Shown here in pieces: positions 54,443-59,152 of a stretch of DNA of 64,000 bases. The stretch lies in sequence record PP968062.1. One strand, written 5' to 3'. A model generated the notes under the pieces. That model did not search any database. It was not told the DNA's origin and saw only the letters and a list, made by a program, of their open reading frames with translations. The translations under genes were made by a program, and so were the position numbers. Positions within the stretch are counted from its first letter, which is position 1; every line of letters begins with the position of its first letter.

Positions 54443-57400
54443 ATGCGTTTGAAAATTCATCAGTTTCTGAAGAACTACAGCCTTCGAAACTCCGGCGAAC
54501 TATTGCGTCCGCGTTTGTTCCCGTTAGCGAAGCTGGAACTGCCTCTTGAGGTAGTATATCAGTTCCTTGATGACAACGCTGCTGTAAAGGGTCCGAGTCA
54601 ATCGGACCCCCTCTTTGCCAAGCTGCAAGGAAAGGTGTTCATTGAGCACGTTACACAGCTGGAGACTCTTGATGGTAACGCTCGGCGTACTTCGCTTATT
54701 CCGACTACCCTTGAAGCAGACTTCCGTCGTCAGCACCGTTTCTTCAAACCACTGCGTAAAGATGCGGCTGTAAAGCTTAACACACAGAACGTTGCTGTAG
54801 TCAACTACAGCATGCTGAACCCGCTTTGGAAATACCAAGCCAACTTCAAGTCGAACTGGTATCGCTGGAGCAACAATACTGCTACCTTCTGGAAAGGTGT
54901 AGCAGATATGCATAAACGTTTCGGCTGGAACCAATTCATCGAACTCCATATCCCGGAATCCATTCCGACGTTTAACGAGTTCAAGATGTTGGAGCGTGGT
55001 ACCACTCAGGCATTGCTTGAGAAGTTCCGTACCAATGCAGCACTGAACGTTTTTGATCTGTATCGTTTCCTCGGTGAAAACCGTGCTTCTTCTTATCTGT
55101 CTACTTTGCCGAAAGAAGCATACGAGAAGATTAACTTCCTGATTCGTGTACAGAACAACTTCTTCGTTATTAACCTGGGTCAACTGGAACAATGGCGCGA
55201 TGCTCCGGAAGTTATTGCCGAGCAAGAAACTGTAGCCACTGAAAGCTTCGTTGATGAACTGGGTCTTGAAGTCTTCTATAAACCTGACGTATTACAACGT
55301 CGCATGATCAGCCTGTTGACTACTCTCGTTGAGTACAACAATGGTAACGATACTCTCATGGAGGTCGAACCAGAGGCACCTAAGATCACCGATATGGTTG
55401 AACCCGAAGACAAGTCCACTGACGAAGAAGAAGAAGCTGAAGAAGTTACTGAGCGTGCAGAAGAAGCTGAGGAAGGTGTCGATACAGATGCTATCGATGA
55501 TACATCCGAATCTGGTTCTAATGTTAGCTCCCTGCTTGACCTGGGTATGCTCGAAGTTGTATTTGAGCCGCCACCCGAGTCCGAGCTTGAGAAGACTACT
55601 CTTGTCATCGAGAAAGATCCGCTTGAGACAGCAGAAATTGCTAAAGCACCTACTCTCAAAGTAGAAACTGCTCCGGTAACTAAATCGATTATCCCAGCTT
55701 TCAGTAGCGGTGATGCGTTGGTTGATCCGGTTGGTCAGAAAGCTTATGACCTGTACCAAGTCGGTATGATCTCTGCCCGTGCATTTGAACAGGCTGTAGA
55801 TGACTCGGCTATGTATAAGTCTATTCCGGATCCGTTTGGTTCGGGTAAGACTATTGCAGAAGCAATGACATATGAAAAATCTGACTTCGTAATTCCATCT
55901 GAACAATTCGCTGACAAAACCACCATCACTGACAAGTCGATGCTGGGTGCAGTTCACAAAGCGATGATGCGCAAGTACACGAAGACTCTTCTACCGAAAG
56001 ACATCATGCAATCTATCCTGTCCATTCAGGCTCAGGGTGTAGCTGTTACTGATGTGCGTATGGAAGAAGTCCGTGATGCGATGAACCACTACCAATCGTT
56101 CACTGTTACTGTGAAACCGATTCGTGGTCGTCCTTCTCAACTGCGTTTCCGTATTCCGGTTATTGACCGGGATGGTCGTTTCCGTTCCAATGGTGTTACT
56201 TATCGTCAACGTCTGCAACGCGCGGATATTCCGATTCGTAAAGTCAACCCACTTAAGGTTGCACTCACCAGCTATTACAACAAGACTTTCGTAAATCGTT
56301 CTGAGCGTGCTGAGAACAACTACGATACTTGGCTGATCCGTCAGATCGGTGTACGTGCTCGTGATAACAATGACGTGTCGGTAACTGATGTACGTTATGC
56401 TGAACTGGACCAAGCTCAATTCGTTCTGCCTCGGGTATACTCTGCTCTGGGTCGTGCTTACCGTTCGTTCAAGAATGGTGCGAATGAGTTCTACTTCAAG
56501 TTCGACGATCATGCCGAGTACTTCCACAAGACCTACGGGATTTCCGTAGAAGCGCTTGAGAAGGATGGAATGGTTGTTGTGGGTTCCCATAACCGTCTAC
56601 CGATTTTGGTTGACCAAGGTTCTCAGTTCTACGTTAAAGAAGGTAACGATCTCGAACCGATGGGGACGATGATTGATATCCTGGGTCTGAACCAAGTGAA
56701 AGCTCCTCTGGAAGCAATCCTTGTTTCTGTGGCCAACAAAGAACTACCCCTCGGTTTCATCTTGGGTTATCGTCAAGGTCTGTCTGGTCTACTGGATACG
56801 CTTGGCGTTCAATATCAAAGTCATCCTCGTGGTACTCGTATTAGCGTTAGCCCCGATGACTACACTCTGGCATTCTCTGACGAGATCCTGGTGTTCAGTC
56901 GTCAAGACTACCGTGCTACTCTGGTACTCGCTGGCTTGAAGCGTTATCATCAATCTCTGAAGAAGTTCTCTCGTTGGGATTTCGATCGACGTGACGTCTA
57001 CTTCCGTCTACTAGAGGAAGCTGGTCTCTCTGCACGTTATACTCGTGAGATCGATGGCCTGTTTACTTCCTTCGTTGACCCGATCACTAAAGGTCTGCTT
57101 GAAGAGATGGGAGAGCCGACTGATTTCCAAGGTCTGCTATACCGCTCTGTAGAGCTGCTGACTAATGACTGGTCTCCTGCCGAGGTAGACGGTGCATACA
57201 TGCGCTATCGCGGCTATGAACGTATGGCTGGGGCTATCTATGGCAGTCTGAACCGTGCTGTTCGTATATACAACAACCGTGAAGGTTCTGCCGATCAACA
57301 GATCGTCATGGATCAACACGAAGTATGGCGTAAGATTGCATCTGACCCGACCGTTGCTACTATTGAAGACTCGAACCCTATCGCTAACTTGCGCGAGCAA

Positions 57401-57664
57401 GAAGCCATGACCTACCGTGGTGATGGTGGCCGTGGGCCGGACTCGATGGTTGCCCGTACACGTATCTATCACGAGTCTGATGTGGGCGTTGTATCTGAAT
57501 CTACTGTTGACTCTGGTGACGTGGGTGTAATTGCCTATCTGTCTCCTGATGCCAACTTCAACAGCATGCGTGGTACTACCCGTATGTTCGAGAAAGGCAA
57601 AGACGGTACGGCTAAGATGTTGTCTACTGGTGCACTCACTGGTGTAGCTACAACCAACGATGAT
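54443..57664 (+). CDS. virion RNA polymerase beta subunit, exon 1 (phiKZ gp178-like)
   Basis: 1074 aa ending TTNDD; MTYRGDGGR...VSESTVDSGDVG. Continues in frame after the intron as PKRINF. Confidence 0.9.
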
Positions 57665-58012
57665 TGAGGTTATTGAATCGGAAAGTCTTTTCAGATTTGA
57701 GAAACCTTTGGTCCCAATGAATAGCGATATTCATTTGGAATCTCCCTTAATTGCTGGAACCTCCTTAGAGCTAATCTAACCACTGCGAGTCGAAAGACAA
57801 AGCCAAGGTTTGAAAATAGATTAGATTGGACAATCAGCAGCCAAGCTCCGTATAGGAGAAGGTTCAACGACTAACCGCTTATCACGGTGTACCTGCCAAG
57901 TGGTGGGGAAATAGGGAGCCTCTCAAGTAGAGGAAGATATAGTCTCCTCTTTAGGGAAACCTAAAGCAGTCGAAAGACGGAATTGATCTAACGAATCAAT
58001 TTGAAGACAAGG
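57665..58012 (+). mobile_element. group I self-splicing intron without homing endonuclease (348 nt)
   Basis: P AATTGCTGGAAC, Q AATCAGCAG, R GTTCAACGACTA, S AAGATATAGTC. P1: exon CGATGAT pairs with IGS GTTATTG (U-G at the splice site). P10: TCGG pairs with exon-2 CCGA. GAAA-capped P9 hairpins and terminal G. Removal restores DD/PKR. Confidence 0.93.
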
Positions 58013-59152
58013 CCGAAACGTATCAACTTCGTTTCTATTCAGCAACAGCAAGGTATCTATGCAGACGGTTACGAGGTTACTCCTCTCCGTACTGGCTACG
58101 AGCAGATCATCGCTCAACGCACTAGCTCTATCTTCGCATCCGCTGCTGAACAAGATGGTGAAGTTATTGCTGTAGATGCTCACGGTATTACCGTCAAGTA
58201 TGCCGATGGGGAAATCTTCAGTTCTCAACTGGGTACCGTTCATGGTACCGCTGCGGGTGTAAACTATCCGCACACTCTGACCACTGGCCTTAAGAAAGGT
58301 GATAAGTTCAAACGTGGTGATACTCTGGCTTTCAATAGCAAGTATTTCACTGAGGACCGCTATACTCCTGGACAGGTTCTGTGGAAAGCAGGTGTGATGG
58401 TTCGTGTTGCATTCTGCGATAACCTTGACACGCTTGAAGACGGATCGGTAATCAGCCGTGACGTAGCGATCAAGCTGAATACTCAGACTACTGACATTAA
58501 GAACATCACTGTTCGCTTTGATCAGGCAATCGAGAATTTGGTCAAGGTTGGGGATCACGTAGACTTGGATTCAATTCTATGTACTATTCAAGACCCCGAA
58601 ATGGCCAAGAACTCTCTGTTTGGTGCCGCGAGTATTGAAACCCTGAAGAAACTTTCCGCTAACGCTCCGCGAGCGAAAGTTGTAGGGACTATCTCTAAGA
58701 TCGAATGTTACTATCATGGTGACATCGAAGATATGTCTGACAATCTTCAGAAGGTAGCTCGTGCTTCTGATAAAGAGAGAGCCGATAGGGCCAAGTCGTT
58801 GAACGAACCGGAATTCACTGGTGAAGTCGACGCATCCTTCCGTGTTAAAGGTCAGATGCTTGAACCTGACAACATGGTTATCCGAATCTACATCGACCAT
58901 GATATCCCTTGTGGTACTGGTGACAAAGGTGTAGTTGCGAACCAGATGAAAACTGTGTTCTCTCGGGTAATGGATGGTCGGAACGAGTGTGAAGATGGTA
59001 CTCCGATTGGTCTGATCTTCGGTAACACATCGGTCGAAGAACGGATGGTCATGTCCCCTAAATTGATTGCGACTACCACAATCTTGCAGCAAGCACTTTC
59101 TCAGCATATAGCTGCGCTCTATCGAGGAACCACAAATGCAAAATCAAAGTAA
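58013..59152 (+). CDS. virion RNA polymerase beta subunit, exon 2
   Basis: PKRINFVSIQQQQ, LEDGSVIS, GTGDKGVVANQMK. The track TTG start at 58001 lies inside the intron. Confidence 0.9.
   Translation, partial: PKRINFVSIQQQQGIYADGYEVTPLRTGYEQIIAQRTSSIFASAAEQDGEVIAVDAHGITVKYADGEIFSSQLGTVHGTAAGVNYPHTLTTGLKKGDKFKRGDTLAFNSKYFTEDRYTPGQVLWKAGVMVRVAFCDNLDTLEDGSVISRDVAIKLNTQTTDIKNITVRFDQAIENLVKVGDHVDLDSILCTIQDPEMAKNSLFGAASIETLKKLSANAPRAKVVGTISKIECYYHGDIEDMSDNLQKVARASDKERADRAKSLNEPEFTGEVDASFRVKGQMLEPDNMVIRIYIDHDIPCGTGDKGVVANQMKTVFSRVMDGRNECEDGTPIGLIFGNTSVEERMVMSPKLIATTTILQQALSQHIAALYRGTTNAKSK

Follow-up and report, generated by a model that had tools for sequence, protein, structure and literature searches.

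A 348-nt, endonuclease-free group I intron in the virion RNA polymerase gene of Pseudomonas phage HPP-Temi, a probable endonuclease-deleted member of the PhiPA3 gp210 intron lineage

Interference between co-infecting phages by an intron-encoded homing endonuclease was described for the jumbo phage PhiPA3, whose gp210 nicks the gp178 gene of phiKZ (Birkholz et al., 2024; PMC11620839). PhiPA3, which carries the interrupted allele, is unharmed by gp210 over-expression; phiKZ escape mutations map within the codon of the second Asp, two to three bases before the insertion site. To reach a rival genome, gp210 must be imported into the nucleus of that phage, and such import does not occur for every phage nucleus (PMC11620839). 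The gene of this 330-aa HNH nickase sits in the P2 loop of a 1,352-nt intron: its ORF lies between the P2 strands, and its last codons run through the P2.1 hairpin, where the stop codon is found. To our knowledge, gp210 is the sole intron endonuclease so far shown to act as an inter-phage weapon. The psbA intron of cyanophage S-PM2 has no ORF and occupies the target of the free-standing endonuclease F-CphI, a case of collaborative homing, mentioned in PMC3428280, in which the occupied allele is spared. The DNA polymerase introns of SPO1 and SP82 are likewise group I introns of phages; their HNH nickases, of the I-HmuI type, take part in competition among related phages during co-infection, and gp210 and its relatives possess the HNH_3 and NUMOD/I-HmuI-like domains common to this type. 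I-HmuI and I-HmuII cut alleles both with and without the intron, and I-PfoP3I spares intron-plus DNA (PMC3428280), so that an occupied site cannot always be assumed to be protected.

The PhiPA3 lineage also includes an ORF-less intron, in the gp273/274 gene of phage 201phi2-1. The annotation gives this gene as one joined CDS, described as 'interrupted by a mobile …', with AHDD / MKRIGF at the junction; the intron scores 87 bits against Rfam, and its splicing was indicated by proteomics and by two long reads spliced exactly at the borders (PMC11512511). Among available experiments, these give the strongest evidence that introns of this type are spliced. Here, we analyzed a 64-kb stretch of DNA (the window) in which an original prediction, made from the sequence alone, had placed an intron of this kind, read either as a shield against rival homing endonucleases or as a degenerate remnant. 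That prediction recounted the content of the gp210 study as published, and missed the ORF-less homologue already known at the same site in 201phi2-1.

The window is 100% identical to Pseudomonas phage HPP-Temi (PP968062.1), a jumbo phage of the genus Pawinskivirus with a 302.7-kb genome and P. aeruginosa as host. HPP-Temi positions below are window positions on the + strand, obtained by subtracting 62,000 from the record position. The published description of the phage mentions neither an intron, nor the polymerase, nor an endonuclease. The interrupted gene encodes the virion RNA polymerase beta subunit, as had been proposed, and is the orthologue of phiKZ gp178 and PhiPA3 gp211/209; profile matches and the record annotation identify its neighbors as orthologues of gp180 and gp177.1. 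Exon 1 (54443-57664) comprises 1074 codons ending in ACC AAC GAT GAT (TNDD), covers positions 2-1050 of the PHROG 3148 profile, and is collinear with residues 1-1074 of the PA1C protein. Exon 2 (58013-59152, coding 58013-59149) comprises 379 codons plus a stop codon, starts with CCG AAA CGT (PKR), and covers positions 1051-1423 of the same profile. On this 1,424-position profile the two halves abut with zero overlap or gap, and the alignment to PA1C-type relatives begins exactly at 58013. In PA1C the gene is uninterrupted over 4,362 nt and encodes 1,453 aa, reading GVATTNDD PKRINFVS over the junction. The predicted spliced HPP-Temi product matches it both in length (1,453 aa) and in its junction residues, reproducing the proposed fusion of TTNDD to PKRINF in a subunit of about 1,453 aa. 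Homology to the profile halves and to the contiguous PA1C gene thus fixes the intron at 57665-58012 (348 nt), with U57664 as the final base of exon 1 and G58012 as the final base of the intron, the terminal G that had been called.

A cmscan search of the window against all Rfam families returned a sole hit, to the group I intron model RF00028 (Intron_gpI), at 57681-57966 on the + strand. The match spans the full model (1-253) with 70.5 bits and an E value of 7e-16, above the gathering score of 50, and this covariance search bears out the group I call, as does homology to the gp210 intron. The segment is a genuine, previously unannotated group I intron, for which self-splicing is predicted. GenBank lists the gene as two separate 'RNA polymerase beta subunit' CDS, the first of which, CDS0210, corresponds to exon 1. 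Between them, CDS0211 (57660-57779, 39 codons, 'hypothetical protein') runs from exon 1 into the intron, and CDS0212 is given a TTG start that lies within the intron, at 58001 (58001-58012). CDS0211 and the start of CDS0212 are annotation errors, and the polymerase gene should be a single joined CDS.

The P (57749-57757), Q (57832-57841), R (57862-57873) and S (57934-57944) elements could be read directly from the sequence and agree with the Rfam alignment, so that the core was indeed complete as claimed. The predicted P1, also part of the original prediction, can form 7 bp between the end of exon 1 (57658-57664, CGAUGAU) and the guide (57669-57675, GUUAUUG), closed by a 4-nt loop, with the U57664-G57669 wobble at the 5' splice site. 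The P2 hairpin (57674-57700) ends in a short capped terminal loop, the slot that holds the endonuclease gene in relatives, and is followed by the P2.1 hairpin (57714-57738), whose PhiPA3 homologue holds the last gp210 codons and the stop; compensatory differences separate the P2.1 of HPP-Temi from that of PhiPA3 in their alignment. The catalytic core (57742-57944, P3-P8) was delimited with the cmscan alignment. P3 (57742-57747/57913-57918) and P4 (57752-57757/57834-57839) were assigned by hand, and P5, P5a and P5b occupy 57760-57830, with a GAAA loop at 57792-57795. P6 (57841-57849/57855-57862), P7 (57869-57873/57940-57944), P7.1 (57874-57877/57885-57888), P7.2 (57892-57897/57902-57907) and P8 (57919-57923/57929-57933) complete the core. 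The peripheral 3' domain (57950-58012) consists of P9 (57950-57955/57960-57965) and P9.1 (57969-57971/57976-57978), each with a GAAA loop, P9.2 (57981-57987/57995-58001) and a 3' tail up to G58012. Extensions P7.1/P7.2 and P9.1/P9.2 are typical of phage IA introns, and the predicted fold of the HPP-Temi intron is of this type. P10 is the element of the original prediction that did not hold up: at most one or two pairs between the guide and the 3' exon are possible, and only C58013-G57668 can pair adjoining P1. P10 is dispensable in many group I introns.

We further investigated the conservation of this fold by running RNAalifold on the last 310 nt of 16 introns occupying the same site (site A, see below). 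P5b, P6, P7, P7.1, P7.2, P8, P9, P9.1 and P9.2 were predicted from the alignment, and P3-P5 were not. Compensatory double changes were found in 38 of the 52 consensus pairs, among them pairs of P5b, P6, P7.1, P7.2 and P8, and covariation extends through the 3' domain including P9.2; P7 is nearly invariant. Even between HPP-Temi and its close relative from run X1 (described below), P7.2 differs compensatorily and P9 shows two double compensatory changes, at 57951/57964 and 57954/57961. The splice sites are also conserved. Exon 1 ends in GAT, giving a U at -1, in 16/16 site-A alleles; the 53 distinct intron-less alleles divide into 30 with GAT and 23 with GAC (Fisher p = 6e-4, uncorrected for relatedness). 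The terminal G was present in all 13 additional same-site introns checked. As judged from these alignments, the structure is under selection and the family is one of working ribozymes. A conserved fold is expected of a shield and of a remnant alike, since no intron that interrupts an essential gene can afford to lose splicing.

The original prediction placed the intron at or near the PhiPA3 insertion point, and the alignment shows that the two positions coincide: in the same gene, both introns directly follow the second Asp codon of the NDD motif. In both phages exon 1 ends in AACGATGAT, the flanking NDD and (P/M)KR residues align, and the introns fold into the same predicted helices. With 74.8% identity over 290 aligned columns, the PhiPA3 core is the closest to that of HPP-Temi among all introns compared. 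The two differ in that the 1,352 nt of PhiPA3 include the gp210 gene and the 348 nt of HPP-Temi hold no ORF, and in the first codon of exon 2, Met in PhiPA3 (MNDD, intron, (M)KRVGF) and Pro in HPP-Temi. The 336-nt intron of 201phi2-1 belongs to the same lineage, is inserted at the identical site, is ORF-less like that of HPP-Temi, and shares 67% identity over the core. It differs in its lack of a P5 extension, in its phage genus and host (P. chlororaphis), and in retaining 13 codons 92% identical to the gp210 C terminus, none of which are detected in HPP-Temi.

More distant phages carry related introns that encode an endonuclease. In Serratia phage 2050HW the exon-1 match stops at the same DD codon, and a gp210-like gene (43% identical) is followed by a core segment 83% identical to HPP-Temi over ~130 nt. 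Serratia phage Haymo and Pectobacterium phage ParM-25 also have a gp210-like gene with a core segment just 3' of it, and are grouped with it on these two elements. All three introns differ from that of HPP-Temi in possessing the endonuclease and in belonging to distant phages, with ~45% protein identity in the flanking exon. Beyond this gene, the P4-P6 part of the HPP-Temi intron (57741-57852) matches the cores of introns elsewhere at 80-88% identity. Among these are the phiKZ gp56 intron (L004 2949-3270, at 50.2 kb of phiKZ) and introns of the N4-like Pseudomonas phages PAP02, LP14 and YH6 and of E. coli phage nepoznato, so that members of a single intron family are found at many sites.

The HPP-Temi intron holds no endonuclease ORF, as the original prediction had noted: the longest stop-free stretch is 59 codons, counting both strands, and tblastn with eight HNH endonucleases from homologous introns gave no match within it, not even a nuclease stub. 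Eleven HNH queries against the whole window found nothing significant, and a free-standing endonuclease gene beside the polymerase gene is absent, the neighbors being the gp180 and gp177.1 orthologues. In contrast to S-PM2, where the nuclease gene adjoins the intron-bearing gene, a collaborative-homing arrangement is thus absent here, since neither the flanks of the gene nor the rest of the window contain a free-standing nuclease gene. HPP-Temi has a second group I intron (record positions 234163-236066; L104 3683-5586), ~115 kb from the polymerase beta intron, which splits the DNA polymerase gene into two annotated pieces. It reaches 59 bits with Rfam at L104 4966-5301. The HNH endonuclease that it encodes (444 aa) has 26% identity to gp210, and no other gp210-like gene was found in the HPP-Temi genome.

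We then examined the history of the missing ORF with public contigs aligned to 57300-58400. A 46-kb contig from DNA run X1 is ~94-96% identical to HPP-Temi and carries the same intron, but the tip of P2 (57684-57689) is replaced by 1,014 other letters. This adds a net 1,008 nt, close to the length difference between the PhiPA3 and HPP-Temi introns (1,004 nt), and by size and position the insert is a putative endonuclease gene. When the X1 type was sought elsewhere, the best match to the exon 2 protein was at 73%, an exact 29-mer search in IMG/VR gave no match, and an identical-protein look-up returned only L106, a Logan contig that is the nearest intron-less relative (88.5% identical to HPP-Temi). 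One landfill and one wastewater sample yielded short contigs that match HPP-Temi perfectly over the exon 1-intron border and P2, so that the ORF-less form exists beyond the isolate.

Introns of site A without a full nuclease gene form a graded deletion series of 3' nuclease stubs. The last 94 codons of a gp210-like gene (L066 1059-1340, E 7e-27) remain in a 659-nt intron, the last 40 (L056 1055-1175) in one of 429 nt, the last 28 (L050 3054-3138) in one of 479 nt and 13 in the 336 nt of 201phi2-1; no stub is detected in the 348-374 nt of HPP-Temi, L034, L072 and L087. Because of this series and of the P2 insert in X1, endonuclease loss is the likelier history for HPP-Temi, and on these sequence comparisons the remnant reading has better support than the shield reading. 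The similarity of HPP-Temi and 201phi2-1 to the 3' end of gp210 was considered as proof of a remnant and set aside, as the gp210 ORF ends in P2.1, a hairpin needed by the whole lineage. We also looked for a co-conversion tract, comparing the spliced HPP-Temi gene with PA1C, L106 and PhiPA3 in 100-nt windows and site by site, and found no excess of PhiPA3-like sites beside the intron. Identity between HPP-Temi and L106 shifts from ~85% to ~96% at ~58210, 198 nt into exon 2. This shift may be an old recombination edge not attributable to the intron; no donor was identified for it.

To place these alleles among relatives, we surveyed the junction by tblastn with a 240-aa PA1C segment spanning it. 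The gene was found in 292 phage records, with an uninterrupted junction in 269; in the remaining records it is split at or next to residue 120/121, as in Vibrio phage BONAISHI, Serratia phage BUCT660 (inserts of ~515 and ~435 nt, respectively) and Serratia phages 2050HW and Totoro. Seventeen IMG/VR loci and 80 metagenome loci were further recovered with the exon 2 protein. Queried on its own, exon 2 gave 124 metagenome proteins of exon 2 size, which also points to many split genes. Both flanks were available in ~85 viral or metagenomic loci, ~26 of them interrupted, about half of these with gp210-like HNH genes. The site of HPP-Temi, site A, accounts for 15 of these ~26, including the PhiPA3 and 201phi2-1 records. 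Nine other loci (L030, L048, L053, L060, L062, L065, L075, L088 and L099) are interrupted 11 nt downstream of site A, where the intron follows CGNGT and splits the Val/Ile codon of PKR(V/I)NF (site B); some of these introns have gp210-like HNH genes and others do not. Sites A and B are never occupied together in one locus, and two inserts, in L036 and L044, were left out of both classes for want of clear borders.

All 24 interrupted metagenome loci except L030, L060 and L099 reach the Rfam gathering score. Insert sizes are bimodal (~340-480 nt and ~1,300-1,800 nt), and every long insert tested encodes an HNH_3 plus NUMOD/I-HmuI-like protein; those of site A and of most site B members are 37-49% identical to gp210. 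Counting HPP-Temi, site A is evenly divided between introns with a full-length nuclease frame (eight) and without one (eight). L051 and L074, which appeared as decayed nuclease genes when ORFs were restricted to ATG starts (78 and 208 codons), have full-length frames without internal stops and were rejected as such; judging by their sequences, these two genes probably use non-ATG starts. In some metagenomic relatives, further group I introns were seen elsewhere in the same polymerase gene (L036 4393-4719, L048 1281-1678 and L028 1651-2072). Between gp180 and gp178, phiKZ carries a group I core on the minus strand (92 bits, L105 4897-5218) after the HNH gene gp179, and its gp180 has 490 aa against 550 aa in HPP-Temi. 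As this core follows gp179 just upstream of gp178, the short phiKZ gp180 is probably completed by a small second exon; gp179/gp180 are already listed among the phiKZ introns (PMC11512511).

We next considered what the occupied site may mean for infection alongside a gp210 producer. The predicted spliced junction of HPP-Temi matches the native intron-minus site of gp210 at 37 of 60 positions, including AACGATGAT and GAAACG, whereas the phiKZ gp178 site matches it at 31 of 60. An intron-less HPP-Temi allele would thus resemble a gp210 substrate. By analogy with PhiPA3, whose interrupted allele is unharmed by gp210, HPP-Temi should be spared, and the occupied site probably gives it passive immunity, as a by-product rather than a demonstrated selected function. 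Such a shield is the standard consequence of an occupied homing site and involves no new principle. The immunity is not guaranteed either, as at least two HNH enzymes of the I-HmuI family cut intron-plus alleles.

Taken together, the HPP-Temi intron is likely a self-splicing descendant of a mobile intron of the PhiPA3 gp210 lineage that has lost its endonuclease gene and resides in an essential gene. We infer that it splices in HPP-Temi, with indirect support from 201phi2-1 and from the viability of the phage despite the interruption of an essential gene. A public run labelled as RNA-seq was examined as evidence for splicing and rejected, since it is DNA-like and holds fragments only, with no intron-skipping joint; its depth at 57820-57890 comes mostly from unrelated group I introns with a conserved core. 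One could instead take the gene to be truly split, with two ORFs (the first ending at the TGA at 57665, the second starting at the TTG at 58001) producing separate subunits. This is how GenBank lists it, as two CDS, and natural splits at other positions occur in the RNA polymerase subunits of chimalliviruses (PMC7598289). We nevertheless consider it highly improbable: what separates the pieces is exactly a ribozyme that matches the full-length model with a high score and shows covariation, the break falls within a conserved motif that is contiguous in most relatives, the U at -1 and the terminal G are kept in all same-site alleles, and the 201phi2-1 homologue is reported to be spliced (PMC11512511). 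The history of the ORF leaves more room for doubt. The HPP-Temi form could be ancestral, and PhiPA3, the X1 relative and others could have acquired the endonuclease gene in their P2 loops at a later time. That endonuclease genes can invade introns independently is accepted (PMC3428280), the P2 loop is short and neatly capped, and HPP-Temi, L034, L072 and L087 hold no nuclease remnant. We nonetheless consider a primitively ORF-less origin unlikely: PhiPA3 and, as judged by position, X1 have the ORF in one and the same loop, homologous introns at the same site carry graded 3' stubs, and the same-site endonucleases form one family (37-49% identical), which fits an old association over repeated invasion. 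The direction of change that we infer from these comparisons is therefore one of loss.

A different question is whether the nuclease-free intron is kept for the protection that it would give against gp210-family nucleases of co-infecting chimalliviruses, sparing the phage the cost and self-risk of a nuclease of its own. The insertion site is identical to that of the gp210 intron, an intron-less junction would resemble known gp210 substrates, and many introns at this site, in cultured as well as metagenomic chimalliviruses, carry gp210-family genes; by size and position, that of the near relative X1 is one of them. ORF-less introns are also about as frequent at the site as ORF-bearing ones, and the identical ORF-less form recurs in two other environmental samples. 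All of these observations are, however, equally expected from the ordinary homing cycle: invasion followed by ORF decay and by persistence of the intron in an essential gene explains the data no less well than selection for a shield would. The host gene itself compels the ribozyme to be conserved, which makes this conservation uninformative here, some HNH relatives cut occupied alleles (PMC3428280), and gp210 is not imported into every phage nucleus. A selected shield thus appears doubtful.

Under the favored reading, an endonuclease-deleted mobile intron, transcription would proceed through the intron and the RNA would fold into P1-P9.2. Free guanosine would attack after U57664, the released exon 1 would then attack after G58012, and the ligated mRNA would encode a single 1,453-aa subunit with the TTNDD-PKRINF junction. 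The intron would once have been mobile, its HNH gene later being lost from the P2 terminal loop. It would survive because only exact excision restores the essential gene, so that selection keeps the ribozyme working. It would not home by itself, and could be copied into empty alleles if a co-infecting relative supplied the nuclease. With 348 bp separating the halves of a gp210-type target, the allele is probably a poor nuclease substrate.

The HPP-Temi intron is a new member of a known, apparently common intron lineage, and its ORF-less state is an ordinary stage in the life of such introns. HPP-Temi was characterized with therapy in mind, and its record needs correction to one essential 1,453-aa subunit, currently annotated as two genes and a spurious small ORF. 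The site is occupied in roughly a third of the sampled chimallivirus relatives, so that the PhiPA3 phenomenon is likely common. More speculatively, the DD/PKR region may be an arms-race hot spot, in which gp210-family nickases would be the weapons and nuclease-free introns, at two positions 11 nt apart, cheap immunity alleles kept by selection; we regard this idea as improbable. If true, HPP-Temi would be a disarmed but still armored P. aeruginosa phage with a sibling lineage that keeps the weapon. Three allele states are covered by these phages, an intron without nuclease (HPP-Temi), an intron with gp210 (PhiPA3) or an ORF-sized insert (the X1 sibling), and an empty site (PA1C), and at least HPP-Temi, PA1C and PhiPA3 infect P. 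aeruginosa. This natural set of alleles bears on two questions, the protection afforded by an occupied site and the fitness value of protection without a nuclease.
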